Origin: Oculina patagonica
Taxonomy: Eukaryota
NCBI RefSeq assembly: GCF_052425735.1
Contig: NC_135763.1
Location: 29,326,001-29,390,000 of the forward strand
Direction of reading: 5' to 3'
Length of the DNA stretch: 64,000 bases
The position numbers were made by a program, and so were the translations under genes. Positions 206-37,600 of this stretch are shown one piece after another. Position 1 is the stretch's first letter. The number at the start of each line of letters is the position of its first letter. The notes below the pieces were generated by a model that worked only from the letters and a program-made list of their open reading frames with translations, had not been told where the DNA came from and did no database searches.

Positions 206-3200
206 CGAGTCGAATCTGGTATGACTGTGGAAAGGGCACACCGAAAACACAATGAGCGGCTGTTACCACGTACTGTGGTGTCACCAGTGTACTACCACAC
301 TTAAAACTGAATTGTCCAGTGGTCTCATTTTTGATGAGTAGCTCCGCCTGCCAGGGCCACGAGTGTGGAATGGCTGTCTCACCTCCGACGATCCGGGACA
401 TAGGGGGACGTATACCACAAGGCAAGTCGTCAAGATCAGGAGAATCTGTAAAAAAAATTGTAGCGAGTTGCTCTGGAATTAGCGCATAGTAAGGGTTAAG
501 CTCGAGAGTATGTATACTCGAAAAATAAGCATGCTTTTATATGTATTTTGTATTTATAAAACGGATTGCTTTTGGACGTCGCCCTTCTTTTTTTTAAAGA
601 CGTCCTACTTTTTTGGACGTCGCCTACTTTTTCAAAGGACCTTTGTCACGAATTTAAACATATTTTTTAAACAGCTCAAACTTTTTTGTCGCAGGAGACC
701 TAATAATAATGGTCCATTTTAATTAACAATCGCTATATTACAGCACTAAAACTGTTAACAAGCATTTTGGGCTGCGCGGATGACTAAGACAGAAATGGAT
801 TGCAACTTGTAAAATTAAGGCTTAACTTTTCAAGTTGTCTCCATGCCTTCAAAAAATCTTTATAGTGATCTTTATAGTCGAAGTTTGATTTATGCCGGCA
901 AGATAAGTTATATCTTCCTTTAAATGCTCAAAGATTAATGTTTTCCATTGGTTAAGTTGCCTGACACTAATTTCAGGACAGCTTAGACAAAAAAATCTGC
1001 AAAATCCCCGTGACGTAGCTCCTTTACGTTTATCTCATTTTCAGTGAAAATATCATTAACAATGCTCGAAAATGTTCCTTGATTGTGAATATGTGGTCGT
1101 GATTTCTTCAATAAAACCGAAAAAAGGACTGTCACTCCTCCAATTTGAAGTAATAGTTCTCAATAAACGAAAGAAAAAGAATTTAACCCAATACACCGCG
1201 TGACCTAGTCCTTGGGCAAGACACTTTACTTACATAGTGTCTATCTCCACCCAGGTGTATAAATCGGTACCGGCGACATAATGCTAGGGGGGTGGGTACC
1301 CTGCAATGGACTAGCATCCCATTCACGAAGTAAAGGAAAAGTCTGTGTCCGAGCCAAGTAGCCCATACAGCCGGAGCTTATCCCGGTTTCCGTAGCATTA
1401 AGTGACTAGGAGTATTGCTACTCCCCCCTCTATGGGATGCTAGTCCATCGCAGGGTTACCCCCCAGCAGTAAATTCGCTGGTACCCATTTATACACCTGG
1501 GTGGAGAGAGCCACTGTGAGAGTAAAGTGTCTGGCCCAAGAAAACAACGCAGCGCCCAGGCCAGGCCTCGAACCCGGGCCGTTGAACTCGGAGTCGAGCG
1601 TACTCCCCGCCTCCCACTCCCATTCCGGTAGGGAGTAGAGATATTCCTAGCCACTTAATGCTAACGACATCGGGATAAGCTCCGGCAGTATGGGCCATAT
1701 GGCTCGAGGCTTCCCCTTTTTTTAAGCCATTTCAACTACAAAGCATGGTACCTCTTTCTCCTTCCGGGATCTCACACTCTGTGTTCTCTGGATAGTCACA
1801 CATATTTTTCTCTTCGTTAAACATCAGTCCATCTGGGCAAGGCATCTTGTTAGTGTTTCCTCCAGAGCAGGCGATGAATCCAAAACAAGTATGTGGATCT
1901 TTGTAATTTCCATCTTGCTTTCCTTTACAAAATCCTTCATCCAAGCAAGTTCCTACAAACAAAAATTTAGGGATTGTTTAGTAGATTCTAGATAAGTAGA
2001 TGTTACAAACGTTTGCTTGCAGGAGAAAACAGGGGCAAACTAACTAATTATAGCGCAGTCAGAAATAAATGGAGAAATTTTTCCAAATCATAGCTAAATC
2101 ATAAAAAATTTCCAAATCATAGCTAAAACATAGCTAAATAACTTCCAAATCATATATGTAGCTTTGTAGATCTTTCACGACCGAGTTATCAAGTGAGTAC
2201 TGACTTATTTTGTATTTATCATGCAAAACTGCGACTCCTACGCATATGTGCTAATGGAGGCCATAAAATTGTGCATAAAAATCTCCATTTATATCACGTC
2301 TAAATTACTGTTACGTCTGAAATCGAAAATGCAATAAAAATAGCCATCCTTTAGACAGTGAATGTCGCAGCGATCACATCAGGACATCACATATTTAAAA
2401 ATAATACAAAGAAGATAAATAAATAAAAATAAATAATTTACCTTTTATTTAGACAGGATGAGGATAAAAGCTAGAAGCTTGTGGGGCCGTGTATTCCTGA
2501 TCGAATTTGAATTCGGAGGTGTTGGTTTTTTGTGGAGGGAGGAAAGCCGGAGAACCCGGAGAAAAACCCTCGGAGCAAGGACAAGAACCAACAACAAACT
2601 CAACCCACATACATGTATAACACCGAGTCCGGGAATATTGGCACATTGGTGGGAGGCGAGCGCTCTCACCACTGCGCTATCCCTGACCCCCTCATGTGTA
2701 CATGTACTAAGTTTGTATTTTTTGATGAACAAGTTAATTAAGTTTTTAAATAAACTGTCGTGCTGCGTTGGCTAAGGCGGGCAAGTGAAACACTTAGGTA
2801 ATTATTAACTGGAAGCCGATCAGGGTAAATAACATGCCGTAGCGACTTTTGAACACTTAACTTTTTTAGTGTAAGCCCTTCGTCAAAGCACATTGTTATT
2901 GATCCACTCAGTGCTCCGACAAAGGGCCAACGCCACAAGGCGAAACGTCAGCTTTACAAAATTTGCTACAGGGCGTTATTTACCTCAATCATCTTCCAGT
3001 TGATACTCAACTGCATTTGTTTGACAAATGTTTTTTTTTTTTTCAAGTTTATTTTGTATCAGATAGAGCTACGTACCGAGCTGTACATGGAATGCAGTTC
3101 AAAATAGGACCAAGTATGTACGTAGAACCCGGGGGGGGGGGGGTTCTTTTTTTTTTTGGGGGGGGGGCCCGGGGGGGGTTTGGATATAAAAAAGGGGTGA

Positions 3201-9289: not shown

Positions 9290-10095
9290 GAAAGTCTGTA
9301 GTGATTTTAATTTTTCGAAAGATTGTGTGTAACGTTAGCAAACAGGATTAAAAAGTAATCTTTTAAAATCTGATGGGTTTGCCAAAACGAAAATCAGTTT
9401 TGTTAGATCCTGACATCTGTAAGACACGTTAATTAATCTAACCGACTGGGAAAGGAAGGTAGACCATTACCTTTAGTGCTTCGATAATTGCTCTTTAAAC
9501 ACCGTACATGTAATAAACATGAATGTGCATAAAAAAATGTGCTACATGTCGGAAAAGTATTTTACAGTTAAAACATTTGTTGCTCCAAATACGAAGCTTT
9601 AATTCCCCAGTGGTGCTAATTTTACCAGCAAGATAGTTTTTTCCTTTTCAACTTTGGTGTAAACGTCTTTAAGGAACATGGAAAAGAGCATAGATAAACA
9701 GCAGTTAAAATGTTTAGGAATACTTTGTACGCGTCCGAACTTAAGCAAACATTAATTAAAATAAATTGTTAAAAAGTAACCTTTTAAAATCTGATGGATT
9801 TGCCCGAAAAATCGTTTTTGTTCGACACTGACATCTGAAAGACACACGTTAATAAATCTAACCGGCAGAAAAAAGAAGATGGACCATTACTTTTAGCGCC
9901 TCTACAATTGCTCTTTAAACACCTTACAGGTGATAAAAGTGAATGTGAATAAATGTGCTACATCGGGAAAGTCTTTTACAGTTGAAACTACTGTTGCTCG
10001 AAAGATGAAGCTTTCCCCAGTCGTGGTAATTCTATCAGCTTTTCTTGCACTCTCAAAAGGTAAAATGTTTCTTATCAAATAAGGTGTTTAACGCT
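9290..10095 (+). repeat. Two tandem ~420-bp promoter + exon-1 units; the upstream unit carries a dead signal-peptide exon
   Basis: Anchor TTGCTCTTTAAACACC at 9488 and 9908. Unit 1 has ACG (9591) in place of ATG and AT in place of the GT donor; unit 2 holds the live exon 10005-10059. Confidence 0.85.
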
Positions 10096-13000
10096 ATTCA
10101 ACATTTTGCAGTAAGACTTCGTGTGGAGAGCCGAGCACCATTCACAAAATTCTAGTTCTCAATTAACTTGAATTTTTATTTAAAATAGAATGAATCGAGG
10201 TTCGTTTGTTATGTTTGAGACTTCAAAAAAAATCTCAGTCACTAAACAGCAGCTTCTACCAAAGACAACTCTTGTTTTATTGGCTTTGAGGGTCATTTGT
10301 TAAGGAGTGCAACTGTCTTCTGAAAGGCTTTAGTATTGAAAAGAAAGAAAAGAAAAAGAAGGCTAAAATTATACAGCTTTTGTTGATCCTATCTTGGTTC
10401 TCAGTTTGTCTTATTATTTATAATAACCAGGCCTCCAAACTGAAAATGTTTATTGAAAAGTAAGAATCGGATCTCGAAGTTTCTTTTAATTCACTTCAGT
10501 AGTGGAAAATGGAAAATCCGAAGCACATAAGCTAAAATGAAACTTATACAATCAGCAATTAAGTAAAGTAAGTCAGAAAATCGTTCTTTTGCCAAATTTA
10601 TCATAAAAAAGAAACAAAATCACTAAGGAAATCTGAATTTATCCTTTAAGGTTGTGGCAGACGTCACTTCACCTCTCGCGTCGTTGGCGGAGAGAATGCA
10701 CCTAAACATTCCTGGCCATGGCAGATCTCACTGCGAATGCGTATCGAGGGCCAGCTGAGGCACATCTGTGGCGGTTCCCTGATCGGTGACCAGTGGGTGG
10801 TGACAGCGGCGCATTGTGTCGTGAATGAACAGGACCAACCAAGCAGTCCTGATATGTTTACTGTTGTAGTTGGTAAGAAAATGATTCCCAGCCTTGATAA
10901 CCTACAGTTTAACGACGATGACGACGACAACGACGACGATAACAACAAAAACATTACGACAACTAGTTAACTTTATTTTCATGAACATAAATTCAAGCAG
11001 CATTGTATACAAAATTATTAACTTTGTAATTGCAACACACTAAAATATCACTTACAAAACGAATACTTAACTGCTTAACTTAAAAACCCACATTACAGTT
11101 GCATACACAAGTTAAACTTGTTACATTATTACTTACAATACCAAAACATGATTACTTATGCCCCCAATACTAGTAAAGAATACAATTTAGCAAGTTAATT
11201 TAAACGTAAAAATGTGCAAATTAATAAAAAAAAACTTTTAGAGAAGTTCGGCCGATTCATCTACCTAATGCTTTTTATTGTTCACTGGTAGATACTTGTA
11301 TTTACTTGGTATTTGCGGTGTAATCATTTCGATGGAAAACGCCTCCTAACTTAAGAGTGTGAATCAGTCAGAAGAAAATTAATCTTAATACAAACTGGGT
11401 TTTTGTGCGATTTCTGATTTAGTAAAACGCTATATTTTATCCGAGTAAGATAACACATAAAATAATTACAATTAAATATAAAATAATGGAAGCTTTAAAA
11501 AAGTTCCATTAGTTAAATAACACTATTTGAAAAAATTAAAATAATCGCCGCTCTTTTAACTCCAAAACTTGAATGCATGATAGAGAAACTGCACTATATC
11601 AGTAAAGCATACTAATATATTATTTTTTACCTGTGTAGGTGCACACGAGCGACTTGGCACAACCGATGTACAGCAAGCGATAAAAGTGGAAAAGCTCTTT
11701 GCTCATAAGAGCTTTAGCATGCAACACCTGAGAAATGATATCGCCCTTTTGAAACTAAGCACACCGGCAAAGCTTAGCGACAAAGTAAATACTGTTTGCC
11801 TTCCAACCCATGGATCGAGAATTCCTGACGGGCACAAATGCTATATAACAGGTACGGTGCTCAGGCATATTTATAGCTTGTGGTTAGCGTTCCATATCAA
11901 TATATCAATAATCACAAATTGTTATCTTTTTATTTAGAAACTTAGGTATCCCTAGTGGGTTCTCGCCTTTTTTATATATAGAAAAAACATCTGATATGCT
12001 TCTGGACGCAATTTTAATCAATGCTTTAGAAGGTTAGAGTACCTGCTGTGATACCAAATTTAGTGTAAATTAGCAGTGTCTCACCTGTTTGGTCCGAGAT
12101 TGTGGTTTGCACTTTGCATAAGCACAAGCAAAAGCATGAACACGAATAGCAAACGCACCGCATTAACTTTATGCCGTCAATACAAGGCCTGAGCGAAAAT
12201 CATAAACGCGAGAAACTATTGTTCGTTCTTATTGCTCATTCTTATTTATTATTGTGCTCATTCTTCTGAGGTCAGGTTCCTTTGTCTTACACATTTATTT
12301 TCTTGCCAAATTTTGTCTAGGATGGGGGTTAACAGAAGGTGGCGGTAACGTGGCAGACATCTTGCAACAAGCGATGCTTCCCGTACAGAACCCCGACACA
12401 TGTTCTAACGTGAACAGCCCTCTGGGACCAGTTGACGAGGCCACTATGATCTGTGGAGGAAGTGGCCAAGCCAACCAGGCCGGTGGTTGCCAAGGAGACA
12501 GTGGTGGGCCGTACGTATGCGAGGAGAGCGGAAAGTGGGTTCTGCGAGGGGCTGTGAGCTGGGGACATGGCATGTGCATCACTGAACACTTCACGGTCTT
12601 TTCACGAGTCAGTTCCTTCAGGAACTGGATCGACAACAAGATGGCAGGTGAAAGTGAGTATCAAGCAAGCATCTGAATAGTGTGACCACTTTCAAGTTCG
12701 GTCATTATACAATTGAAAGCCGGCTTCAGCTTCTAGTTGACATTTGATTGGATAAAAAATGTAAAATGTGAAATAATTAACAGTGATCACTGTACTCTTG
12801 TGGACTCCTTGTTCTAATATATTAAGATTGCTGTCCGACATTTAATGTTGTCTGATCAACATCGTAAAATTGTGGACAATTCAAATAGTATAATGTATTT
12901 TGAGCCGGAAAATGTACACGTAGAATCTGTGTAGCTTTAATTCCCTAAAAGTAAATTTAATTTTAATAACCTCCACAATGTTTTCGTCTTAAAGTTGTCA

Positions 13001-16760: not shown

Positions 16761-19700
16761 CTGCCTCGTCCCCAGGCGCCGATTGGCCGGACGTTGAGGC
16801 GGTAAGGCGGGAAAACAGGGAGCGCGGGGATTGATGGTTAGGGAGCGAGCCGCGGAGCGCCTGGCAGATCTTGCATTCAATATGGCGGACCAAAATGTCA
16901 TCAACCCTGAAATGTGTATTAAAAACAGCAAAAGAGCCGTCTATTTAGCATTTTTACAGCACAGAGCGCCTTGGACACATCTTTTATGAAAAATATTCTT
17001 ATTAAGACGACGGACTTCACCACCATTTTCGCACGCTTCATGTCCCAGCTCAGCTTGAGAAGAGCCAGGAGGAGCATACGAGGCACTCTGTGAAGTTAAA
17101 AAAGCTTTAAATCCTTTACGGCAAAGAGACGTTGAAATGTCTAATGACATTTTCCGAACTCCAAGAGAGACAGGTACTCATTTCCGTTTATCGAAGTTGT
17201 CTTGTAAATCCGAGTGTAAATGACAAGAAAATTAGTTATCCTTTCCATTGTTTTGTGTAGAATTTTTTTCGTAGAGCCCGAGAGTTAGTTGCCTTTTAGT
17301 TATTCCATGGACGCTCATTTAAGCCAGACGCGACAAAAATAATGCAACAACAGTATGAATCCATCGATACAAATAACAATTCATCTGTCTTTGGGATGTC
17401 ATTTCTACTATCTCTGGTTTACTTCAATTAAATGTTAATTATCTGCTTATCAGTAATCAAGCACAACCTTTGATAGTTGTTTTATTAATTGAAAATAAAA
17501 ATTACATTAAAAATGTTTGATATCATAACTGTAATTTTTTTCAATGCAATTTTTTTTATTGATTGCCAGTAGGTGACTTTTTTCCCATTAAACTACAATT
17601 TATTAAGGATAAATACACATTTTTTTTGTTAAGCATTGTGGCAGTGAGTCTGCCATTTATGCTGTGAATGCAACTGAGGCAACTAAATTGTTTGGAATGT
17701 ACCCTATGCCATGCCATGCAGGCTTTTAATTTGGGGGCAGGTGCAGAGAGCATTTCTGATGAATGTGACACTGTTTCCATGAAGTTTTTAGAATGGTTCA
17801 TGTGCGGTATATGATTTAAGATCATCTTGAAATCTTGCTTTGTAAAAATGGAAAGATAATTTTTCTCATAAATATTTATGTATTAATATGCAAGGCTAGC
17901 ATCTTTGGACATCCAAGGCCCACCATCATTCTATTCTAAATAACTCTAGTAACAAACCCCTCTTAATTTTTTATCACTCTCCTGTAATTCTTTACAAATT
18001 TAAAATAGTACATGTATTTGTAAAATTCTTTACTTTTTTAGCAACTGAAAAGAAATGTTTACTTTGTGCTTGCAAATTTGGTGTCTAAAGGCCTTTGTTA
18101 TGCTCCCACTGACTTGATATTAACTAATTACAAAAGGAGCTGGGGTGAACTGTACATGGAGGGTTGAAGAGGGTAGTAAATCACTTTAGAAAATCAATCA
18201 AGTTAATTTTCAGGAGAAGGCTAACTATTATGTCCAGATCATAATCAGATGAAGGGCACCACCAAGGAAATTGTCGTACAAACAGTAATCCTCAGATTAT
18301 CTCATGCACAACTTATTTAAATTCACAGTAGGTTAAGGCCATGCAGGTAAAACCCTCCTGGCTAGATAACTTTTGCAAATTGAAGGGAAATGTCTGAATG
18401 GTTTTGCAAAATCAGTACTACTAAAAATATTTTTAAAAATGTAAAAAGGTATCTTTTTCTCTTACAACAGCTGTTGTCATGTGTATAAAGCAGCAGGGTA
18501 GGCAAAGCACACATTCAACATTTAAAGTGTTTTAATTGTTTTCCAAGACTGCTAGAGGCAGTGGGCTATTAGCAGACTGGGGAAAAAGTGGCAACTCCAG
18601 GTTTGCCGGTTTATTTATTTTAATCAAATTGAATATGGTTAGCCAGGAGTTGCCATGTTCACATCAAATGCATTTAAGAGTCAGTAACAAACTCTTTGAT
18701 GTAAAATTGCCTGGCATCTCAATTTATTTTCCTACACTATCTCAGCCATAAACTCTTGGGCCGGCAAAAATGATTTAAGTTTTGCTGTCTGTCATAGTCC
18801 AGTGTTTTGTTACCCTTAGGAATAAAGTTTTGCCACACATTCTCTAAAAACACCTACTTAAAAAACACTCCCTGTGACACTACAACTAGAAAAAACTATA
18901 TTTTTTTTGTTACAAGTTTGTCAAAGTCTTATCCTGCTTAAATCCTCCAAAAGAGTGACCAAAACCTTATTTCTCCTTACAGTATCAATGCATTATCAAG
19001 CAGTACAGTGACGAGAAACACACAAATTAATCAGCGGAGAGTAATTTCGATATTAACACTTGAATCAGTAAAAAGAAATTTTGAGTAGGATCTGCCTCCT
19101 CTGGTCACTAACACATTAAGTGCTGAAATAAACAGAACTACGCAAAGTTGAAATTTCAATAATTGTACTTTCTGTCAAGAAAGGTAAATTATGAGGTTAA
19201 CCTAGCTAGAATTAAATATCAGCACACATTATAATTGTTTATGTGTCATGTTCTCATAAGATCTCCTACGTTGGACAACATTAATTTGATAAAACACTTG
19301 TTAGCACTTGAACGGCTCTCTCTGGAGCGCTGCTTATAGACTTTATAGCTGAAGTTTAACGGCCAAGAGGTACAAATAAAAGTATACCGAAATGTAAGGA
19401 AGCTAAGCACTGCTCAGAAACGAAACAAACCAGCTCTGGCATCGATTGAAGCGAAACTTACCCTCAGTTCGAAGCTTATAAAGAAATTTAATTTTCTAAC
19501 GACGGCAGATATTCTTTACCCTCCGCCATTGACGATCTTCTCGCAATCAAAGTGGGATTTTCTCTGTTCAATCTTCTGCTCAGATTTCATATCATTTCTC
19601 CGGATAAATCGCTGATTTTGAGCTAGATTTCCCGCCAACATTAGATTAAAGCAAGGGGACCCCCGCTTTGCTGAAACCAGCCTCAGTGAACGCTGAAAAG

Positions 19701-19999
19701 AATCGGCTCGATAGAGAAACGAAAACGATCCGAAAGGCCGTCAAAATCCCCATGTTGACAGTACTAACTTCCACGTAGCTCCCAGTGTTGATTTCTTGAC
19801 CGTTAAACTTGTTAAAAGCGCTAAAACGCCTTTTGACGAGAAACCGAACATTTTTGCCAAGAAACTGAACAGGATCTGCCAGGCGTCCGCTTCCCCGTCC
19901 GCATCAGGCCCAGAACGCCAAGCGAACCGTGCACGTCAGTCCCACAACACCAAGCGAACCGTGCACGACCAAGGACGAGGACGCCTGGGGACGAGGCAG
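16761..19999. mobile_element. 3239-bp non-autonomous DNA transposon, 18-bp perfect TIRs, 9-bp TSD
   Basis: CTGCCTCGTCCCCAGGCG at 16761 and CGCCTGGGGACGAGGCAG ending at 19999; ATCTGGATC at 16752-16760 and 20000-20008. No intact transposase ORF seen. Confidence 0.9.
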
Positions 20000-20174
20000 A
20001 TCTGGATCACTCCCTGCAGGATATGGAGGTCGCTGTCCCGTGAAGGCAGGCCTGGTTAACCAACACCACCGAAAGAAACAGGGAGAGCCACGACTTCAGC
20101 TTCACGTGAATTGACTTCTTTGTCTTATCGCGGCAACGTTCGCTTATGCAACGAACTTTTTAACGGTAAAACAG

Positions 20175-22779: not shown

Positions 22780-24755
22780 CATGGACTATTTGCAGTTAAA
22801 ATGTTTCAAAATAGTGCATGTAACTTTAGAAGACACAATTTAAAAGTAACGTTTTAAAATCTGATACCTGAAGTTTGCCCACCAAAAAATCAGTTTTGTT
22901 CAAAACTGACATAATAACACAACAGTCAATAAATCTAATCGACTGAGAAAGGAAGATGAACCATTGCTTTTAGTGTTTCAATAATTTTCATTTAAGCACC
23001 TTACAGGTGATAAACGTGTACGTGTACGTATTAACGTGCTACATCGGAAAAGTACTTAACAAATAAGCTTACTGTTGTTCCAAATATAAAACTTTCCCTG
23101 GTCGCAGTAACTCTGGAATTTTTAGCACTCTCCACAAATAGTTTTCTTGTTATTAAGTGAGAGTCAACGTCCTTTAAAAACATAAGAAAAGAAAAACGTA
23201 GAAAATCTCCAGCTATAATGTTTCGAAATAGTACATGTAACTTTAAAAAACATAATTTAAGAGTAACCTTTTAAATTCTAATGGGTTTACAAAAAAAGGA
23301 AACTGTTTTGTTCGACACCTGACATGTGAAAGACACAAGGTAATAAATCCAACTGACTCAGAAAGGAAGATGGACCATTACTTTAAGTGTTTCGATAATT
23401 GTCATTTAAACACCTTACAGGGGATAAACGTTAATGTTAATAAACGTGCTACCCCGAAAAAATACTTTACAGTTAGAACTACTGATGTTCCAAATATATG
23501 GGTTTGCTCGGTCGTGGTAATTCTAAAGGCATTCCTAGTAGTCTCCTAAGATAATATTTTTTTCTTATCTATTAAGGTGTTAACGTCCTTGAAGAACACA
23601 AAAAAGAACATACGAAATATTGCGTGTAACTTAAGCAAACATAATATATGCAACCGTCTAAAATCTGATGGTGACATCTAAGAGATACAAGTTTATAAAT
23701 AAAAACGACTGGGAAATGAAGATGGACCAATACTTTTAGTTTAAGTGTTCCGATAATTGTCATTTAAACACCTTACAGGTGATAAAAAGGTATAATGCGT
23801 GTATAAATGTGTTACATTGGAAAAGCCCTTTACATTCAAAACAACTGATATTTCCTAAGATAGGTTCCCGGTGGTAGAATTCCGACAGCGTTCCTAGCAC
23901 TGTCTTGAAATATATTTTTTTTTTCTTAAAACTAAGGTGTTAACACCCTGAACATAGAAAAAAAGGCAGAAAATCTGCAGTTTTAATATTTTAAAATATT
24001 GCGTGCTACTTAAGCAAACATAATTAAAGAATAACCTTTTAAAATATTATGGGTTTGCCAAAAAAGAGATCATTTTTGTTCAATGCTGACATCTAAAAGA
24101 CACAAGTTAATAAATCTAAACGACTGGGAAAGGAAAATGGACTATTACATTGAGTACTCATATATTTTTCATTAAAACACTTTCCAGGTGATAAACGTGA
24201 ATACGCGTATAATTATGCTATATTGGTACAGTACATTTACAGCTAAAACTACTGATGTTCCAAATATATAGGTTTCCGCTATGGTGGTAATTCTGATAGC
24301 ATTCCCAGCACTTTCCTGGGATTTTTTCTTCTCAAATAAAGTGTTGACGTCTTTTAAGAACATTGAAAGAAGGTGGAAAATCTGCAGTTTTAATTTTTCG
24401 AAATATTGCGTGCTACTTAAGCAAACATAATTACAAAGTAACCTTTTAAAACCTTAAGTGTTTGTGTTTGTCACTCTTTGCGATGCTAACATCTAAAGGA
24501 CACAAATAAATAAATCTAACTTACGTGGAAAGGAAGATAGGACACTTCTTTTAGTGGTTCCAAAATTGCCATTTAAACACCTTACAGGTGAAAAATGTGA
24601 GTGTGAATAAATCTGCTACATCGGAAAAGTCCTTTGCAGTTGAAACTACTGTTTTTCCGAAGATGAAGCTTTTCCCGGTCGTGGTAATCCTGACAGCATT
24701 TCTAGCCCTCTCCCAAGGTAAAATGTTTCTTGTCAAAAAGGTGTTACCCTCTTTA
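22780..24755 (+). repeat. Five tandem ~360-415-bp promoter + exon-1 units; only the last exon copy is intact
   Basis: Anchor CAC(C/T)TT(A/C)CAGG at 22997, 23411, 23769, 24178 and 24578. Each unit ends in a homologue of the signal-peptide exon; units 1-4 lack the GT donor. Confidence 0.88.
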
Positions 24756-25579
24756 ACACTGTTGTAGTTATTTGTACTTTGCAGTTCAAGGAGTGAGTCT
24801 GTCTTCCAAATGATACATTTTTTTATTGCTCCTCTTTTGCTACTCAAAAATCACTTAAGCCTGGTTTTCACTAGCGACGCAAGCACAAGCGCAAGTACAA
24901 GCACAAGGATAACCACTCTTATTTCACCGTGAAAACTGCTTCAAGGTAAGCAAAAGCACAAGCGTATTGTATTTTAATGCTTCTGCTTTTGCTTGCCGCA
25001 AAATTTGTCCTTTTAGCGTGATTCCGCTTGTGCTTGCGTCGCTGGTGAAAACCAGGCTTTATGAATAACCAGGCTGTCTTTTATCAAACTAAATATCTTT
25101 AAGGAAAAGTACGCTTCAGAGCTCGAACTTTTTTCAAATTAATTTTAGTAGAGGAAAATAAACACTCCAAAACACATAAGGTAAAATAAAATCTCGTCAA
25201 CAAATAATGCCTTTGTCGATCTCAGCACAGACGTGGAACTTAAGGCGTCAGAAAAGCGTTATTTTGTCTAATTACCAAAAAATATGAAATAAAATCATCC
25301 AGTAAATCTTAATTCATCCCTCAAGGGTGTGGCAAACGTCACTTCGCTTCTCGCGTCGTTGGAGGCGTGGATGCCCCTAAGCATTCATGGCCATGGCAGA
25401 TCTTACTGGCAAATAATAAAATGAGGAGGTATTGTGGCGGCTCTCTGATCAGTGATAAGTGGGTGGTGACAGCGGCGCATTGTGTCACGGATCAATGGAA
25501 TGGGCTATTCAGTCCTGATATGTTCACCGTAGGAGCTGGTAAGTAGATGATTCCCAGCGTTGATTACCTTCAGTCTTTT

Positions 25580-25619
<40 letters not shown>

Positions 25620-28600
25620 GCGAACACAACAACTAGCTCTATTCGCATGATCAAACTTCAAACAGTACGTATTGCAAAGAGTCCGTTTTTTTATTGCAAC
25701 ACACAGATATAGTACTTACAACACGAATACGTACTTATACTGCTTACAAAACTTACACTAACTTTCACTAACTGCAATATCGTCACACTATTTGCAATAT
25801 TATTACTTACACAACTTATAAACGAAAACGTTTACCACAATTTGGGATGTGATTTTTCCAATTGTCAATTATTTTGCTGAAAAAACTCGTCCTGCTAAAA
25901 GGCGAATATAATACAGAAGATGAGAAATTAAAATACAGAATAGGTTTTTTGATTGAACAGATTTCTGATTGACTAAAAGGCCTTTTTATAGTTAGATAGA
26001 GCCTAAATATTAAATTAACAATTAAATATGTATAAATGAATAAGAGCAACACTGCAGTTCCATTGGAAAAATAGTTGTTTCCCACAAATAGATACACTAC
26101 CAATGATCGAACCCCTCCCCTATAAAACTCGGGTTTCCCTTCCAATAAACTATCCTTAACTTGACCGTTAATACGTTTATCTAGAAATCGGTTTCTCTGC
26201 ATATTCTTTATCTTGGGCAGATACAAACAGAATAGCCAGGCTAGACCTTTTTTTAAAGTACATTCAGGCTTTTGTTTTGTTCATTATAGTATGCTAATAG
26301 CTGCTTTAACCTTTGTAGGTTTACACAACCTATTTGAAACTACTGATGTGCAGCAAATGATAAAAGTTGATAAGATCTTTGCTCATGAGGGCTTCAGCTA
26401 TGCACACATGAAAAATGACATCGCCCTTTTGAAACTCAGCACACCGGTAAAGCTTAGCGACAAAGTGAATACTGTTTGCCTCCCAGCACAAGGTTCCCGA
26501 ATTCCTGACGGGTACAACTGCTATATCACAGGTACGGTGTTTAGAAAGATTTATCTCATCTTATGGGGTTTACCTATATGTGTGCGTATATCGCGAATTA
26601 ATGATCATTTTGTTCAAAAACTAAAGTCGTGCATTGGCATGCTTTAAATGAATTTCAAAGACAGAGATCACTTTATCTTTTTTCGAAACCGTTCTACTTT
26701 TTTTCGAAGTGTTTTCTTATGTATCATCTTTGTATTTCCTCTTCATTGTACATATCCTTTCTAAGTATACATGGCTCGCGAGCTAATGTCAATATCTCAT
26801 AATCATAAAGCTAGGTCAACAGCTATGGTCATTTTTTGTTCTTAAGGCTGATTTTCATCACTTGGATTAAGCAAGGACAAAAACATAAGCGCGTGAGCAG
26901 AACAAACGCACTCAATCCCGTTTGCTGTCGATTCTGAGCGAATAGGCAAAATCATAAACACAAGAAACCACAGTTCATTGCTTTTGCTCATTTGCTTCTC
27001 TTCCTATGACAAAAAGATCGAGTGTTCGTTGTTATAATGCGATGATGCGTATTCTTCTGCTTATTTCCAGTGAAAACCAGTCTTCAATTCCTTTGGCTTA
27101 CACATTTCTTTTCTTGCCAAATTTTGTCTAGGATGGGGGGTAACAGAAGGTGGTAACATACCACACATCTTGCAACAAGCCATGCTAACCGTGCAGAACC
27201 ACGACAAATGTTCCAAAGTGAACAGCGCTGTGGGTCCAGTTGACGAAGCCACCATGATTTGTGGAGGAAGTGGCCAAGCCAACCAGGCCGGTGGCTGTAA
27301 AGGAGACAGTGGTGGGCCGTACGTGTGCGAGGAGAGCGGCAAGTGGGTTCTGCGAGGGGCTATGAGCTTGCGCTATGGCAAGTGCACCACTGAACACTTC
27401 ACGGTCTTTGCACGAGTCAGTTCCTTCAGGAACTGGATCGACGACAAGATGGCAGGTGAAAGTAAGAACATGTATCAAGGAAGAAGATAATTCACACCCC
27501 TAAGTACAGTTATTATCCAATCAAAAGCAGAGGACTTCTTACAGTTGACTTTCGATTGGATAATACATACCAAAAATATTGTGGGATATCAGTGATCACA
27601 CTTTTGGACTCATTCCTCTAACTTATTTAGATCGTGTCCGTATCCGATCAAAATTATAAAATTGTGGAAAATTCGATATAACACAGGCAGCCCAAGCTCT
27701 CTATTGGATTACCTTTGGACGTGACTTTTGCTTTTTAGCGGTGTTGTGTTACAAAGGTTCGATTTTTAAGGTTTGTATGGGAACGTAACGGTTTTGCTTT
27801 AAAAGTAAAAAAATCGTATATTTTGTGAATAAAATTGACTTACCCTGATTTCGTGTTTCCTTCTTTGCTGTTTGCCAGCTTCTCATGTCGATATAGCAGT
27901 GGAAACCAAAAATAACGATAACTCGCCGAAATCGCGTTAGATCGACCTGAGAAGCTGGCAAACAACAAAGAAGGAAACACAGAATCAGGGTGAGTCAATT
28001 TTATTGAAAAAATATACGATTTTTTTACTTTTAAAGCAAAACCGCTGCGTTCTCATAGAAACCCTTATAAATCGAATCTTTGTAACACAACACCGCAAAA
28101 AAGCAAAAGTCACGTCCAAAGGTAATCTCATAGAGAGCTTGGGCTGCCTGTGGATAAAACAATGCATTTTGAGTCGGGAAATGTACTCGATTTCCTGTTA
28201 GTGAATTTAATTCCAATTAATATAAATTTACATCAAGTATTTCTTTTGACAAGTACAATTCAGAAATGGATGGCCTCGTCAGCGGGCGATTTTTGTATTT
28301 CTTATAATGGCTTTAGTTACCAATCATCCTACCTCATTGCGCCATGGTCACGCATCCTCGACCTCGCTTTGTATATAGCCAACTGGTCTGCCTCCTGCCA
28401 GTTGGGATTTTTAGCCTTGTTATGTTCATTTATAAATTATTTGTTTCCTCTGTTTCAGTGGCATGGCTGTAAACTACAACGTAGCTATCTCGTTGAGATA
28501 TGAAACTAAGTGCATGACCACTACAAACACATATTTTTTTTATTTTTTTTTTAAGTGACTCACTTTGTGTTTGTTTTGTGGCATTTTAATCTCTTAAAGC

Positions 28601-29396
28601 AGTTCAAGGAGTGAGTCTGTCTTCCAAATGATACATTTTTTATTGCTCCTCTTTTGCTACTCAAAAATCACTTAAGCCTGGTTTTCACTAGCGACGCAAG
28701 CACAAGCACAAGTACAAGCACAAGGATAACCACTCTTATTTCACCGTGAAAACTGCTTCAAGGTAAGCAAAAGCACAAGCGTATTGTATTTTAATGCTTC
28801 TGCTTTTGCTTGCCGCAAAATTTGTCCTTTTAGCGTGATTCCGCTTGTGCTTGCGTCGCTGGTGAAAACCAGGCTTTATGAATAACCAGGCTGTCTTTTA
28901 TCAAACTAAATATCTTTAAGGAAAAGTACGCTTCAGAGCTCGAACTTTTTTCAAATTAATTTTAGTAGAGGAAAATAAACACTCCAAAACACATAAGGTA
29001 AAATGAAATCTCGTCAACAAATAATGCCTTTGTCGATCTCAGCACAGACGTGGAACTTAAGGCGTCAGAAAAGCGTTATTTTGTCTAATTACCAAAAAAT
29101 ATGAAATAAAATCATCCAGTAAATCTTAATTCATCCCTCAAGGGTGTGGCAAACGTCACTTCGCTTCTCGCGTCGTTGGAGGCGTGGATGCCCCTAAGCA
29201 TTCATGGCCATGGCAGATCTTACTGGCAAATAATAAAATGAGGAGGTATTGTGGTGGCTCTCTGATCAGTGATAAGTGGGTGGTGACAGCGGCGCATTGT
29301 GTCACGGATCCATGGAATGGGCTACTCAGTCCTGATATGTTCACCGTAGGAGCTGGTAAGTAGATGATTCCCAGCGTTGATTACCTTTAGTCTTTT

Positions 29397-29430
<34 letters not shown>

Positions 29431-32400
29431 GCGAACACAACAACTAGCTCTATTCGCATGATCAAACTTCAAACAGTACGTATTGCAAAGAGTCCGTTTT
29501 TTTATTGCAACACACAGATATAGTACTTACAACACGAATACGTACTTATACTGCTTACAAAACTTACACTAACTTACACTAAATGCAATATCGTCACACT
29601 ATTTGCAATATTATTACTTACACAACTTATAAACGAAAACGTTTACCACAATTTGGGATGTGATTTTTCCAATTGTCAATTATTTTGCTGAAAAAACTCG
29701 TCCTGCTAAAAGGCGAATATAATACAGAAGATGAGAAATTAAAATACAGAATAGGTTTTTTGATTGAACAGATTTCTGATTGACTAAAAGGCCTTTTTAT
29801 AGTTAGATAGAGCCTAAATATTAAATTAACAATTAAATATGTATAAATGAATAAGAGCAACACTGCAGTTTCATTGGAAAAATAGTTGTTTCCCACAAAT
29901 AGATACACTACCAATGATCGAACCCCTCCCCTATAAAACTCGGGTTTCCCTTCCAATAAACTATCCTTAACTTGACCGTTAATACGTTTATCTAGAAATC
30001 GGTTTCTCTGCATATTCTTTATCTTGGGCAGATACAAACAGAATAGCCAGGCTAGACCTTTTTTTAAAGTACATTCAGGCTTTTGTTTTGTTCATTATAG
30101 TATGCTAATAGCTGCTTTAACCTTTGTAGGTTTACACAACCTATTTGAAACTACTGATGTGCAGCAAATGATAAAAGTTGATAAGATCTTTGCTCATGAG
30201 GGCTTCAGCTATGCACACATGAAAAATGACATCGCCCTTTTGAAACTCAGCACACCGGTAAAGCTTAGCGACAAAGTGAATACTGTTTGCCTCCCAGCAC
30301 AAGGTTCCCGAATTCCTGACGGGTACAACTGCTATATCACAGGTACGGTGTTTAGAAAGATTTATCTCATCTTATGGGGTTTACCTATATGTGTGCGTAT
30401 ATCGCGAATTAATGATCATTTTGTTCAAAAACTAAAGTCGTGCATTGGCATGCTTTAAATGAATTTCAAAGACAGAGATCACTTTATCTTTTTTCGAAAC
30501 CGTTCTACTTTTTTTCGAAGTGTTTTCTTATGTATCATCTTTGTATTTCCTCTTCATTGTACATATCCTTTCTAAGTATACATGGCTCGCGAGCTAATGT
30601 CAATATCTCATAATCATAAAGCTAGGTCAACAGCTATGGTCATTTTTTGTTCTTAAGGCTGATTTTTATCACTTGGATTAAGCAAGGACAAAAACATAAG
30701 CGCGTGAGCAGAACAAACGCACTCAATCCCGTTTGCTGTCGATTCTGAGCGAATAGGCAAAATCATAAACACAAGAAACCACAGTTCATTGCTTTTGCTC
30801 ATTTGCTTCTCTTCCTATGACAAAAAGATCGAGTGTTCGTTGTTATAATGCGATGATGCGTATTCTTCTGCTTATTTCCAGTGAAAACCAGTCTTCAATT
30901 CCTTTGGCTTACACATTTCTTTTCTTGCCAAATTTTGTCTAGGATGGGGGGTAACAGAAGGTGGTAACATACCACACATCTTGCAACAAGCCATGCTAAC
31001 CGTGCAGAACCACGACAAATGTTCCAAAGTGAACAGCGCTGTGGGTCCAGTTGACGAAGCCACCATGATTTGTGGAGGAAGTGGCCAAGCCAACCAGGCC
31101 GGTGGCTGTAAAGGAGACAGTGGTGGGCCGTACGTGTGCGAGGAGAGCGGCAAGTGGGTTCTGCGAGGGGCTATGAGCTTGCGCTATGGCAAGTGCACCA
31201 CTGAACACTTCACGGTCTTTGCACGAGTCAGTTCCTTCAGGAACTGGATCGACGACAAGATGGCAGGTGAAAGTAAGAACATGTATCAAGGAAGAAGATA
31301 ATTCACACCCCTAAGTACAGTTATTATCCAATCAAAAGCAGAGGACTTCTTACAGTTGACTTCCGATTGGATAATACATACCAAAAACACACTTTTGGAC
31401 TCATTCCTCTAACTTATTTAGATCGTGTCCGTATCCGATCAAAATTATAAAATTGTGGAAAATTCGATATAACACAGGCAGCCCAAGCTCTCTATTGGAT
31501 TACCTTTGGACGTGACTTTTGCTTTTTAGCGGTGTTGTGTTACAAAGGTTCGATTTTTGTTTTTGCTGCAGCCGCAATGGCTGCAAGCAAAAAAGGAATT
31601 TTGCCGTAAGGTACGTGTGTAAGTGCCGTAAAGAGGAGAAATCTGAACTACCGATGTCAATCAAATCCATGAACAAACAAAATCGAAACCAATGAACCGT
31701 AGCGCTGATCGCATCGAAGTTACGGGCCAAAGTACGAGCACCACGTTGAAGGGAAAGAAAACCGTTTAAAAGTATACGCATTGGGAAAGAATGTGGCGCG
31801 ACCACTCCAGTTTTAAGATCCATCACGAAACAGCGAAGACTTGAACCCGCCGAATTAAATTTTTCTCAAAGGACCGGTTGTCAAGTTAATTCGCTCCCCT
31901 CACCCTCACTTCAGTACCGTTAAATCACGGAGGTGTGCCACCGTAAGAAGAATAAAAACAGTAACCCAAAATAGACCACGAACTCAGCACGTATTCTGTC
32001 GTGGCACAGTAGTTTAAAAAATAATCCCAAATAAAGTTCACAGCTCCGACTGAGGGGTCTAAGTATAGCCCCGCTAAAAAGCTGAAAGGAATTTTTGAAA
32101 AAATTTTACTGCCACGCTGGCGCCACATTTATTTTGTGAAGATTAATTAAACGCCGTGAAAAATAGATGATGTCCAGCGAGCCACTGCCCCGCGTCCTCA
32201 TACCTCCAACTAATCAAAAAAGAACCGCAGAACAACAATGGTCCTTACGATCCCGATTAAGACATGACGAGAGTGCGTGAAGGGATGATGAAATGTATTT
32301 ATTGTTTCAAAATGAATTTGCGTTACGTTCAACGCCGTCTTTCTGTTGTTGTACGCCGGTGCGCGTGCGATTATTTTATTTTGAATTTTGATAGTAAATT

Positions 32401-34631
32401 CAGGTTGAATTAAAAAAGTGATAAAATAGTGATACCGCCACAGTGAAGACAATAAAAGACGTTGGATTTCAATCTCGACTCACTTGTCTTTCATCAACAT
32501 GTTCCCTAAGACTTTGCTCTAGCAGCAAAACACATGGACCCATTGGGGCCCTATTTTTAAGGTTTGTATGGGAACGTAACGGTTTTGCTTTAAAAGTAAA
32601 AAAATCGTTTATTTTGTGAATAAAATTGACTTACCCTGATTTCGTGTTTCCTTCTTTGCTGTTTGCCAGCTTCTCATGTCGATTTAGCAGTGGAAACCAA
32701 AAATAACGATAACTCGCCGAAATCGCGTTAGATCGACCTGAGAAGCTGGCAAACAACAAAGAAGGAAACACAGAATCAGGGTGAGTCAATTTTATTGAAA
32801 AAATATACGATTTTTTTACTTTTAAAGCAAAACAGCTGCGTTCTCATAGAAACCCTTATAAATCGAATCTTTGTAACACAACACCGCAAAAAAGCAAAAG
32901 TCACGTCCAAAGGTAATCTCATAGAGAGCTTGGGCTGCCTGTGGATAAAACAATGCATTTTGAGTCGGGAAATGTACTCGATTTCCTGTTAGTGAATTTA
33001 ATTCCAATTAATATAAATTTACATCAAGTATTTCATTTGACAAGTACAATTAAGAAATGGATGGCCTCGTCAGCGGGCGGTTTTTGTATTTCTTATAATG
33101 GCTTTAGTTACCAATCATCCTACCTCATTGCGCCATGGTCATGCATAAGGCCTCGCAATTTCCTACCAGTTTTGCACATAAAGGAGGCAAGCGTGGCCGA
33201 GTGGTTTAGGGCGCTGGTGTTGTAATCCGGAGGTCGTCGGTTCGAGGCCTGCTCTTGCCACTAGCTGGATTTGTTTCTCGGTTGTCCCTAGTTCAAATCC
33301 TCGACCTCGCTTTGTATATAGCCAACTGGTCTGCCTCCTGCCAGTTGGGATTTTTAACCTTGTTATGTTCATTTATAAATTATTTGTTTCCTCTGTTTCA
33401 GTGGCATGGCTGTAAACTACAACGTAGCTATCTCGTTGAGATATGAAACTAAGTGCATGACCACTACAAACACATATTTTTTTTATTTTTTTTTAAGTGA
33501 CTCACTTTGTGTTTGTTTTGTGGCATTTTAATCTCTTTGTTTTTATGGAGCCAGTTTCAAACCATTTATGTTAATTATACCTTCTTGGGTTTTTTTTTAA
33601 CAGAGTTCAGACTGCCTGTTCTTATTCTTGAGGGTCTGAAATGTCAGTTTTCAATTAAATTTAGCCATCATCATAAAATTACGGCATATTTTACAGCTTT
33701 CGGGTTTCAGCTATTAGTTGAAACGGGCCATTTCTCAGATGAAAGTTATTTTGTTCTTTATTAATTTTCACTTATCGCTTAAATTAAACCCCGTCCAGTC
33801 ACCATCAATCTTGACGACTGTTTTAACTTTTTCTCTTCTTAATTTTACTCTCAACTGGAGAAGGAAGTGGAGCAGGTATCTGGTGTTACCACATTGAAAT
33901 TGACTTCACATTGAAATTGACTTTCTTGTTGTTTGCGAATCTAATCACAGGTAGCCCAAACTACGAATGTGTTGACCTTTGTGTGGGCTGTGTGACTTTT
34001 TGGCGGATTCGGTGCGATTTTCTGGAGTAACGGTTCCAACAGTTTTTATCAACGGTTTCTACTGCTCAATATTTATACCTTTTACCGTTGGAACCGTTAC
34101 TTCAGAAAAATCGTTCGCTGAAAACAAATAAAAACACTCTGCCCACACAAAGAACAACACAGGAGTTCAATTGAGTGATTTCTTATTAAAATTCAAGAGT
34201 AATTTTTCGTATTTTTTTACCCATACAAATTTATCCTTATAAATATGCAAATAGCTCGAATTACGTAACAATAAAAAGGTCAACACATTCCTAGCTTGGG
34301 CTACCTGTGATTAATGGTAAATAAAGGTGACTGGCCTACACGACTCCTACGTTTGTGACATTTGTAACCTTTGCCGTTTTCTGTTGAGTTCGGTCTTTCG
34401 ACCATATTAGCTTCTGACTTTTTTTCTGAGGGTACTGTTATTATTTGGAGGCATTATGTATTGAATGGAGCCGTAAGATTGTGGCCAAGGAAGTGTCTAG
34501 AGGTCATAAGTCTGCGCTGCGTGGTTTCCGTTTGTAGGGTTGAATGACACCTCCAGAGAAAACGGAAAAATATATTTTTATAACCACGAGTTATATTGTA
34601 TTTATTTATTTTTTTTTCAGCTCTGGAGTAA
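24663..34631 (+). CDS. S1A serine protease gene with in-frame internal duplication of the three protease exons (potential 525-aa two-domain protease; 273 aa if one module is used)
   Basis: Exon 1 24663-24717 ([19 protein letters not shown]). Module A: 25326-25538, 26319-26531, 27132-27461. Module B: 29143-29355, 30130-30342, 30943-31272. Terminal exon 34621-34631 (TLE*). One signal exon and one terminal exon only; all phase 1; both modules keep AAHC, NDIALL and GDSGGP. Confidence 0.8.
24858..25058. mobile_element. PIF/Harbinger-type MITE (duplicated at 28675-28875)
   Basis: TIRs AGCCTGGTTTTCACTAGCGACGCAAGCACAAG / CTTGTGCTTGCGTCGCTGGTGAAAACCAGGCT; TTA on both sides. Confidence 0.8.
27682..28152. 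mobile_element. Long-palindromic MITE with CACAG...CTGTG termini (CMC/EnSpm-like); second copy 31473-32943 is interrupted
   Basis: CACAGGCAGCCCAAGCTCTCTA ... TAGAGAGCTTGGGCTGCCTGTG, with inverted similarity over most of its length. Confidence 0.8.
31559..32558. mobile_element. 1000-bp Helentron/DINE-1-like non-autonomous insertion
   Basis: Absent from the matching site in copy A and inserted in a T-run. 5' subTIR TTTTGCTGC with adjacent partial IR GGCTGCAAGCAAAAA; 3' subTIR GCAGCAAAAC followed by hairpin GGACCC-ATT-GGGGCC. Confidence 0.6.
33182..33470 (+). mobile_element. tRNA-derived SINE, third family (other copies 28355-28530 headless, 56536-56835, minus-strand head 59890-59965)
   Basis: A box TGGCCGAGTGG, B box GGTTCGAGGCC; shared body TAGCCAACTGG...CCTGCCAGTTGGGATTTTTAAC. 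Confidence 0.75.
33946..34309. mobile_element. MITE with CACAGGTAGCCCAA termini, AT on both flanks
   Basis: CACAGGTAGCCCAAACTACGAATGTGTTGACCTTT ... AAAGGTCAACACATTCCTAGCTTGGGCTACCTGTG; termini related to the 27682 element. Confidence 0.75.
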
Positions 34632-37600
34632 AGACACTGTATTCCTGGTGCTTCAACAAAGAAATAAATATCATGATGCAATGATTCACTGTAGAATAGG
34701 CATAAGAATATAAGAATAAAGATGGCAAGATACCTTGGCGTGCTGTTTTTATTGATATTCCCGACTTACTTGAAAAAAAAATACTGAACTGCTTGAGATA
34801 CTTAATTGTCTTAACCGTACTATATCGTTGTGGTAGCCAAGAGGTATACTTTTTCGCCAGTGTTTTCGCAAATTATTATTTGAAATCAAGGTATATATTC
34901 TGCCGGTATCCGCCGAGATTTTTTTAAAAAAATAATTGTTTATACACACGAAGTGCTCTCAACAACAAGTGATCTCGACATTATCAGAAGGAAACCATTT
35001 AAAGTCAATTTAATTGACTTCTCAATTCATGCGTGGAAAACGTACAAGGACTTCAAGCGGCACTAGCCAAGCGCGAAACCCTTTACAGAATCTTAAAACG
35101 TAGCAAATCTTGTTAATCTTCGATAAAATCCTCGTCACAATCTAAAATCTTTCTTTATCAAGTATAACCTACAGTATCACTTAATTGAATCACGTAAAGT
35201 CACCCTCATTCTTGACAACTGTTTTAACATATAACCATTCATACCACGACCCGGAGATCTGACTCGCCGACGACATGCCCCCCCGGGCACGCACAGAGCC
35301 GGGGCGACCAGAGAAGGGAGAGGCACGGGAGGAAGAGAGAGGAGACGCAGGTGGAGGAGCGGGACCAGAAGGACGGTGGACGACAGGACGAGGAGGACGG
35401 GCCCCCCGATGGACCACGTACCCGGCCCCCCGCCGTGGAGAGGAACCCACGCCCGCCGAGACCGGCCCGGGAAAGAGGAAGGGGACCCAGAAAGAAGGGA
35501 AAGGGGGGAGGCCCCCGAGAGTCACCGCAGGACGAGGGACCCGGGGAGGGAGGAGGCCGCGACGGGGAGGAGGAGGAGGGAGAGGGCCCCGGACGGGGAG
35601 CCGACCGAGGCGAGCAGTGGCGGACCAGCCCGGGGAGCAGGGTAAGTCAAGTAAGTCATTCATACCAGCAATCTTACTCAAAAGTCTGCTTGTAAAACAC
35701 TTTGACAACACTTTTGAAGTTTAATTGAAGTGAAAATTGACATAGCAGCTGGGGAAGGATCCACCTGAAACTTTGCATTGTACAATAAGTGTAGAACTTT
35801 GGTTAAAACTCGAATTTTTTTTTTTTTTTTGCACAAGGACGTTCCGCTGAAAATTTGTGGAGATTCGTGGCTGAATAACACTTGATGTTGCTATCGATAA
35901 GCTATTCAAGTTTCTGCTGATGCCGGTCGAATAGTGACTTGACGGTAAGCAAAATGTTTTCGTTGCTCGAGTTGTGTGGACATTGTACTACAAATTACGA
36001 AATATGTAGTCTTTTCTTACCTCGAAAACCACCACACCAAATTTCGTAGCCCTTTTTTGTATTTTCTGTTAGAGCATCTTCTTGTATTCCTATTATTGTC
36101 GGTTCAGAAACGCCGGCGAAAAGAGAGTTTACGCCTGCCATTTTTTTTTTTGGATCACGCATTGTTGGAGTGAACTAATGCTTGTTAGCCCGAGAGAGCG
36201 AACCAATCAGATTACTTGAAACACCGAGGTCAATGAGTGTATATGTACTCATGAATATTGGTGATCCGGAGCATTGATGAAATGATGTGGCTAAGGGGCT
36301 GTTAATAAGTCAATATGCGGGGCAGATCGAAGCAGGCAAATCTTTCTTGCGAAGAACTAAACTTAAAATAATTTTAGTCGTCATTTGTGGCTTAGCTCTC
36401 AAGAATGTAATACATATATCACTAATATTTGGGCATAGTATACAGGGGTTTAATGCTTGATTTTTCGACACAAGTTTCTACAATGACATCGAATAAAATA
36501 GAATCTCCATGATCCCGTCTACTTCCCCAGGTAGTTTCCCACCAACTGAAGTTGAAGACCAGAGATGAAAACTTTGATTAAAAAGTGGTGAGAAGTGAAA
36601 CAGTGGATTTTGTATCACCCCCCCCCCCCCACTCCCTACTCCCCCCTCTCCAAGCAGAAGCCGACTTAAAACTGTGCGACGCTTTGAGCTTTTGAAATTT
36701 GCTTGCTTTGAGAAAACCTCTGAGTCATATAACTGCATATTTCTTTCGAATACAACAGCTGTTCAAGAACTAAAGCTGACTTCCAGCAGCTGTTGACTCC
36801 CATAATATATTCGCACGAAGGATAAGCGTAATACTATCTTTTTCCCTGCAACCTCCTACCGCTTCGTGTTTATTTTTCGCGGTTTCAAGACCCGACATGT
36901 CGTGATTACATGCAAGTCCATGGTTAAAACTTTTGTTGCTCTACGGATACAGTGAATTGTGTTCATAGGAAGGCTGAGTCGAATAACGTGATTAGTTTTG
37001 GTTCGAAAAACTGCAATGGAGATAAAATAATTAAATTATAGATGTAAAAATGGCAATCGATTGAGAAACATAGGTAAAAAGGAATAATGTTGGAAAATAT
37101 TTTGCTGTAATGGAAATAAAAGTTAATGTGACTTCACTTCTTTGTGTCCAACTTTGAGATGTGTTATTTAGGCATATAGTCATTTTTGTAGCATTTTCTC
37201 AAGCTTAGGGTGGAAAAAGCTATCTGAATAAAAAATCAGGAATTTCTTGTCTGAGCATAATAATTCAGTGCCAAAGACTTAGATGTTCTATCATGAAGGT
37301 CCTTGTACACCAGCATTTGAACACAGTCATTATCAGTAGATAAAAAAAAACACAACGGTGTTGTAGCAAATGGACAAAACCGCAAAAAAAAAATGGAATT
37401 CAGAAGTTTATACAGAATATAGGTTTTTGTTTCTTCGGAAAAACATATTTGAATCACATTCTTCTTTTCTTTTTAAGTCCTCCTCTTAAGTCAAGTTGTA
37501 GTAACCTTGCAGCGTTTGATGTTTTTTGATGTCCTATTTAGATGTATTTTCTTTCCTGTTGTCCCCGTCAAAGAAGTACAGGACCATTGTTATATTACTC

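Follow-up and report, generated by a model that had tools for sequence, protein, structure and literature searches.

Serine proteases of the S1A type that hold at least two complete protease modules in a single polypeptide are represented in vertebrates by the polyserases, TMPRSS9, and ovochymase, and cnidarian proteins have been annotated in the same way. In these multi-module proteases, each module stands behind a propeptide with a Cys and an activation site of the form R/(I/V)VGG, and the same arrangement is encoded by an S1A zymogen gene of the stony coral Oculina patagonica. The gene lies in a window of 64,000 nucleotides (nt), which is the whole stretch of DNA analyzed here (contig NC_135763.1, forward strand; G000:C6:29326001-29390000), within a 529-Mb, 14-chromosome-scale assembly; positions below are those of the window. 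A head-to-tail tandem duplication has provided this gene with two protease modules, A and B, and a probability of about 0.8 can be assigned to a real duplication from which a genuine fused mRNA is made. A very young polyprotease joined in frame, or else alternative use of the modules, had been proposed from the letters of the window alone (the sequence-only reading), and this proposal is supported by a branch and the word depth in DNA contigs, by a single-copy relative, and by an RNA joint between exon 4 of module A and exon 2 of module B. The type of event is well known, and the coral locus is a fresh, very young case of it. Multi-domain proteases usually come into view only at a late stage, with breakpoints and intermediates already lost, and the known multi-module S1A proteases are old and diverged, whereas in the coral gene the junction can still be read and the single-module gene is still present in a close relative.

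The two-module layout of the coral gene is the same as that of P0180 from Porites lutea (“transmembrane protease serine 9-like,” 543 amino acids, aa), in which the linker ends in CGKGPDSR/IVGG, compared with CGKRHFASR/VVGG in O. patagonica. The P0180 modules are 53% identical to each other and 37–39% identical to the protein of the coral gene, whose own modules differ at only 2 of 252 residues. Unlike proteins of the polyserase/TMPRSS9/ovochymase type, the coral gene has neither a transmembrane anchor nor any additional accessory domain. The best full-length matches (60–66%) belong to the cnidarian chymotrypsinogen/CTRL/chymotrypsin-like elastase family (P0033, “chymotrypsinogen B-like”; P0159 of O. 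patagonica; and the Logan transcript P0163), which has the putative signal peptide, CGKRH propeptide, catalytic triad, and five predicted disulfides in common with the coral gene. However, members of this family have one module each, many with an ShKT or other domain after a phase-1 intron, while the coral gene and its two neighbors end instead in a terminal exon of three codons, and the pocket of the coral gene reads MSLRYG rather than VSWG. Under the exon-shuffling rule, tandem duplication of a symmetrical phase 1-1 exon set keeps the reading frame. The coral block, flanked by phase-1 introns on both sides, follows the same principle and is an unusually fresh case, with the ancestral state kept in a sister lineage. 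In another two-module S1 protein, P0044 (587 aa, with a Thr/Pro/Ala-rich linker), the two modules are 99% identical over 109 residues, the one stretch that was compared; this could reflect a further module duplication of very recent date in a different organism, or else an assembly error.

Self-BLAST of the window, which contains no N, resolves copies A and B (Table 1) into three pairs of matching blocks (A 24781–27767 with B 28599–31558; A 27762–28355 with B 32553–33146; and A 28354–28595 with B 33297–33537). The duplicated unit starts 63 nt inside intron 1 and ends inside intron 4; copy B comprises exons 2–4 without a first exon of its own, and exon 1 is present once. Both the self-BLAST and the exon map thus bear out the earlier description of a duplication running from intron 1 to intron 4, with one signal exon, two protease modules, and one terminal exon. 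Base-by-base alignment of A with B gives 19 substitutions over ∼3823 aligned bases, and a 3.8-kb repeat of 99.5% identity is far beyond chance. The copies also differ by 6 nt of an AAC microsatellite, by 20 nt (A 27577–27596) missing from B, and by two stretches of 994 nt and 150 nt that are extra in B. The first of these has many genomic copies at 72–80% identity, and the second is read as ancestral sequence that was probably deleted from copy A. In a search of the 529-Mb assembly, neither a third copy nor an alternate haplotig was detected at any other place. As a separate observation, intron 4 contains a palindromic element of ∼470 nt (27682–28152, and 32553–32943) that matches itself on both strands and resembles a miniature inverted-repeat transposable element, with dozens of copies at 80–92% identity distributed over every chromosome; the 994-nt insertion private to B sits within it.

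Logan contigs (31-mers) from two DNA runs (X1 and X3) and two RNA runs (X15 and X13) were compared with window positions 24650–30649; the sequencing runs that match the stretch come from corals, X1 is the best-matching DNA run and has the same taxon label as X15, and X3, from a close relative, has another taxon label. In X1, the flank contig 24650–24810 stops exactly 30 bases (k−1) past the breakpoint between 24780 and 24781, as is expected if the sequence from 24781 onward has two different left neighbors in the reads. The matching contig of X3 crosses 24810 and continues to 24877 into the next repeat with no branch. Word depth in X1 is 42.7 in the flank, 84.9 and 84.3 in contigs of exon 4, where A equals B, and 64–76 in contigs with A/B differences, the intermediate values being expected if a variant word reaches half the depth of a common one. 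The duplicated part is therefore at ∼2 times the flank depth in X1, and in X3 the flank has a depth of 95 vs. 74–88 inside (ratio ∼0.9). At 25765, 25772, and 27552, alleles of both copies occur mixed in the contigs of X1, so that both versions are present in its reads. A join of two haplotypes by the assembler would leave flank and repeat at equal depth and the breakpoint without a branch, and X1 shows the opposite, which is indirect evidence that the arrangement exists in the DNA of the animal. The sequence-only reading had warned that such a join would look similar and had pointed to half depth as its sign; with the word depth doubled in X1 and near unity in X3, and with the graph branch, the single-copy relative, and the RNA joint described below, this caveat is largely removed, and the duplication as such is very probably real.

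The single-copy state is found in L009 (GCA_044670265.1, JADOBR010001287.1), an NCBI contig from an independent assembly of a close relative, which was reached via a 99% identical open reading frame (ORF) in the search with exon 4 and which is ∼98.5–99% identical to the window, indels included. L009 has one copy and is contiguous across 24780/24781 and from 28595 into 33538 without the AAA bases of the junction, just as an unduplicated gene is predicted to be arranged, and this single-copy gene shows the ancestral state. From the variants in common, which are several without the two being identical, L009 is probably the same taxon as X3. When the 19 A/B differences are polarized with L009 as the outgroup, 8 are derived in A, including both amino acid replacements (P→Q and L→F), and 11 are derived in B, including a silent T, and a further 24 substitutions set L009 apart from both copies. 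Divergence between A and B is thus about half of that between either copy and the relative, which suggests that the duplication either is younger than the split from this relative or joined two pre-existing alleles. These first mutations are legible together with the junction (microhomology and filler), the hybrid intron, and the ancestral single-copy allele. In addition, L009 is without 3.3 kb upstream of the gene (window 16766–20086).

Transcript evidence comes from X15 and X13, which were judged to be RNA runs from their spliced contigs; X15 is dated 2019 and belongs to a study other than that of X1. One X15 contig of 406 nt contains the last 30 nt of exon 4, then 212 nt of exon 2 with a single mismatch, and then 164 nt of exon 3, with the joint from 27461 to 29143 having GT..AG ends and a depth of 25.4. 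Graph contigs show an anchor of this length (30 nt) where the graph branches, and the reads must contain each 31-mer over the joint. In this contig, the exon 2 that follows exon 4 has P and L and is of the B type at both replacement sites, as predicted by linear splicing from A to B. The junction of exon 4A with exon 2B, which the sequence-only reading had singled out for transcript checks, is therefore present in RNA, and the modules are carried on one mRNA, of which the X15 contig with its exon 4–exon 2–exon 3 joint represents a partial molecule. Two more X15 contigs depart from exon 4 at 27461 and carry on with other sequence; one of them (depth 354, one mismatch) is probably a paralogue, and the mixed consensus of the two exit contigs matches exon 5 at ∼19 of 30 places by manual count. 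In X13, from the single-copy taxon, exons 2 and 3 occur together, preceded by ∼51 bases read manually as exon 1 (no exon 1–exon 2 joint is listed), and exon 3 is also joined to exon 4; no joint of exon 4 to exon 2 occurs among the X13 contigs listed, at low depth. Read-through into 27462 and beyond, which had been named among the results that would speak against the fused gene, is not seen in the contigs listed from either RNA run; those that reach the end of exon 4 stop or jump exactly at 27461. Since the terminal exon is also kept in the paralogues, a transcript ending by read-through after exon 4A has been rejected for now.

The exon structure agrees with the joined transcript. All exon borders are AG..GT and every intron is in phase 1, so that exon 1, exons 2–4 of A, exons 2–4 of B, and exon 5 form one open frame. 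With exons 2, 3, and 4 of 213, 213, and 330 nt, the spliced two-module model has 1578 nt, no internal stop, and two full modules. Translation of the exon join confirmed the in-frame fusion that had been claimed, in which exon 4A (GAA A, donor GTAAGA) and exon 2B (AG, then GG TGT) together produce an AGG codon and keep the frame into the second VVGG. In the hybrid intron between them, the final 43 bases with the acceptor match those of intron 1 at every position. Comparison of the exons likewise upheld the claim of two replacements and one silent change: only three exon differences separate A from B, all in exon 2, namely 25438C/29255T (silent), 25494A/29311C (Q/P), and 25508T/29325C (F/L). The gene annotation should not be split into two genes, nor collapsed to one module.

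Both modules have the translated triad motifs TAAHC, NDIALL, and GDSGGP and contain ten Cys each, among them the Cys of the propeptide and the counterpart of Cys122 (in VCLP). Exons 2, 3, and 4 align with positions 1–50, 61–125, and 127–220 of the Pfam Trypsin profile (PF00089) with E-values of 2e-15, 2e-12, and 1e-15, and exon 1 encodes a putative signal peptide, after which come the CGKRHFASR propeptide and the R/VVGG activation site predicted from the translation. The hybrid intron takes its donor from intron 4 and its branch point and acceptor region from intron 1, and splicing to the nearest acceptor would produce, by default, an mRNA of exons 1-2A-3A-4A-2B-3B-4B-5. Nonsense-mediated decay would not be expected, because the stop lies in the last exon. 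The predicted product would be secreted via its single signal peptide and would contain two complete zymogen modules, each with its propeptide Cys, R/VVGG site, His/Asp/Ser triad, and ten Cys. In chymotrypsinogen, the propeptide stays bound via Cys1–Cys122. By analogy, cleavage at the second R/VVGG site would leave module 1 tethered to module 2 by a disulfide, giving a two-headed protease, and the gene probably represents such a protease at birth. If the fused protein is made, it offers a testable case of a duplicated catalytic domain being tolerated, tethered, and diverging.

Several observations weigh against the reading of a real duplication with a fused, working product. The RNA joint is one contig from one run with a 30-nt anchor, which gives presence and not abundance, and the same joint would arise if transcripts of a single-copy allele were back-spliced into a circular RNA. 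A contig bridging 28595–28599 was not found among the contigs listed, where the site lies between two high-copy repeats that make junction-bridging contigs hard to display. The DNA depth argument is carried by a single flank contig of 168 nt, B-specific pieces were not seen in X1, where Logan contigs collapse the two copies, and L009 might in principle stem from a short-read assembly in which copies were collapsed. At the protein level, the wall of the S1 pocket (213–216) reads A-M-S-L-R-Y-G in both modules (27344–27361 and 31155–31172), compared with A-V-S-W-G-H-G or A-V-S-W-G-H-Y in the neighboring paralogues, and the canonical S-W-G (214–216) is lacking in both. This remodeled pocket may bear on specificity or activity rather than on membership of the S1A fold, and catalytic competence is not assured by the motifs. 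Furthermore, no annotated or assembled protein of the gene was found in the protein collections: a search from the paralogue P0033 (range 183–581 aa) gave a best match to the two-module protein of no more than 66% identity, exon 2B gave 0 matches, and exon 4 gave genomic ORF fragments only, the representative protein library providing family context only.

Beyond the fused gene as such, the duplication may tentatively, at somewhat longer odds than even, be regarded as specific to one lineage and possibly still segregating, with a secreted protease whose two heads are tethered by a disulfide and whose module 1 has already acquired P→Q and L→F beside the His57 loop. If this is true, the single-module relative and the two-module carrier would form a natural pair from before and after the event for the first steps of domain divergence, and the junction would be a simple marker for fixed vs. 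segregating status in coral populations. It is unlikely, in turn, that the duplication is real and the main or working product is something other than the two-module protein, with single-module transcripts (exon 1 to exon 2B, or exon 4A to exon 5) predominating, or with the protein misfolded and degraded, and the locus, in effect a variant in copy number or in alternative modules, heading to loss. All exon blocks are in phase 1-1, so all three isoforms are in frame; isoform proportions cannot be read from contigs; the two X15 exit contigs at 27461, with their partial match to exon 5, are compatible with exon 4–exon 5 joints; and there is no sign of selection, with 3 changes per 756 exon bases vs. 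16 per ∼3060 intron bases. On the other hand, the nearest-acceptor route yields the full two-module mRNA, the joint of exon 4A to exon 2B is the sole inter-module joint seen, and stable two-module S1A proteins of the same layout occur in corals (P0180). Last, an assembly artefact in which two haplotypes of a single-copy locus were strung in tandem, the RNA joint being a back-spliced circular RNA, is in keeping with a 0.5% A/B divergence within the coral allelic range, with insertion differences between A and B such as are found segregating among alleles, with a junction not seen among the contigs listed, and with a single-copy relative, but it is very improbable against a join without gap or assembler-type overlap, a 5-bp microhomology and 3-base filler unlike assembler joins, the X1 contig break at the breakpoint plus k−1 with its flank at half the repeat depth (neither in X3), a B-type exon 2 behind exon 4 in RNA as linear splicing predicts, and no exon 4–exon 2 joint in X13 (at low depth).

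For the duplication favored here, the breakpoints indicate how the copies may have been joined. The CTTTG microhomology at 24777 and 33535 and the extra AAA bases at the junction, both noted in the sequence-only reading, can be read at these positions, and the junction itself (28593–28599) is CTT-AAA-G without an N gap. A join without homology, in which the breakpoints share 5 bp of microhomology and are separated by 3 filler bases, would suggest end joining or template switching during replication. Non-allelic homologous recombination, or unequal crossing-over between repeats, was rejected as the mechanism, the breakpoints lying outside the two nearby repeats with only CTTTG in common. Two very high-copy short repeats (24853–25050 and 28354–28551) flank the junction region with a word depth of 80,000–300,000 in the DNA runs, and the word depth of DNA contigs is very high throughout 28250–28649.

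Table 1. Window coordinates of the two-module protease gene, its duplicated copies, and the duplication junction.
Feature	Position	Strand	Basis or remark
Exon 1: start codon and putative signal peptide, phase-1 donor; single copy	24663–24717	+	Exon map
Left breakpoint in intron 1, CTTTG; unit starts at 24781	24777–24781		X1 contig ends at 24810; L009 and X3 run across
Copy A: 3′ part of intron 1, exons 2–4, 5′ part of intron 4	24781–28595	+	Self-BLAST, alignment
Exon 2A: propeptide CGKRHFASR, activation site R/VVGG, His57 motif TAAHC; derived Q and F	25326–25538	+	
Exon 3A: Asp102 motif NDIALL, Cys122 equivalent in VCLP	26319–26531	+	
Exon 4A: Ser195 motif GDSGGP; ends GAA-A, then donor GTAAGA	27132–27461	+	
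Hybrid intron (1681 nt), composed of a 5′ portion of intron 4, AAA, and a 3′ portion of intron 1	27462–29142	+	Spliced out in X15 RNA contig
AAA filler at duplication junction	28596–28598		Missing in single-copy relative, where 28595 leads directly to 33538
Junction sequence from A to B, longer form AATCTCTTAAAGCAGTTCAAGG; junction word TCTCTTAAAGCAGTTC	Around 28596–28598		
Copy B of the duplicated unit	28599–33537	+	Self-BLAST, alignment
Exon 2B: propeptide and activation site of the second module; ancestral P and L, derived silent T	29143–29355	+	
Exon 3B, identical to 3A	30130–30342	+	
Exon 4B, identical to 4A	30943–31272	+	
Dispersed-repeat insertion of 994 nt private to copy B, in intron 4B	31559–32552		Missing from A and from L009
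Stretch of 150 nt, in B and single-copy relative, not in A	33147–33296		Inside high-copy repeat
Right breakpoint in intron 4, CTTTG; unit ends at 33537	33535–33539		Self-BLAST, L009
Terminal exon 5: completes A/CT, then CTG GAG TAA (T-L-E-stop; stop 34629–34631); short 3′ untranslated region, AATAAA at 34663	34621–34668	+	

The two-module gene lies in a tandem cluster of S1A paralogues with the same exon plan and a terminal exon of three codons, one upstream (10005–12652, with its terminal exon at 13951) and one downstream (42782–44928, with 46071). Exon by exon, the upstream paralogue is 57–84% and the downstream paralogue 62–69% identical to the protein of the two-module gene. The stretch resembling exon 5 in the upstream paralogue lies 1.3 kb behind its exon 4 and has the same acceptor and TLE-stop, with 76% identity over 209 nt; that of the downstream paralogue is a diverged copy, 1.1–1.3 kb behind exon 4. 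In all three genes, the GAAA/GT(A/G)AG donor is kept at the end of the protease domain, and the bases beyond the donor diverge. Relatives carry further domains past the phase-1 intron, for example, a Cys-rich C-terminus with the look of ShKT in P0030 and a PF00040 domain (fibronectin type II) in P0052, and the phase-1 intron after the protease domain is therefore old. The stretches behind the paralogues, the kept donor, and this old intron all support exon 5, which encodes no more than T-L-E before its stop.

Minor features were also observed around the cluster. Isolated fragments resembling exon 2 are located on the minus strand at both ends of the window (246–419 and 57505–57633). Upstream of exon 1, four copies of a 103-nt unit occur within 22916–24728, and a 243-nt repeat (23319–23561 vs. 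24486–24728, 75% identity) overlaps exon 1. Just downstream of the gene, an island rich in guanine and cytosine (GC) at 35190–35724 (∼50% GC vs. 35–40% around it) contains long overlapping ORFs rich in Arg, Gly, and Pro on both strands.

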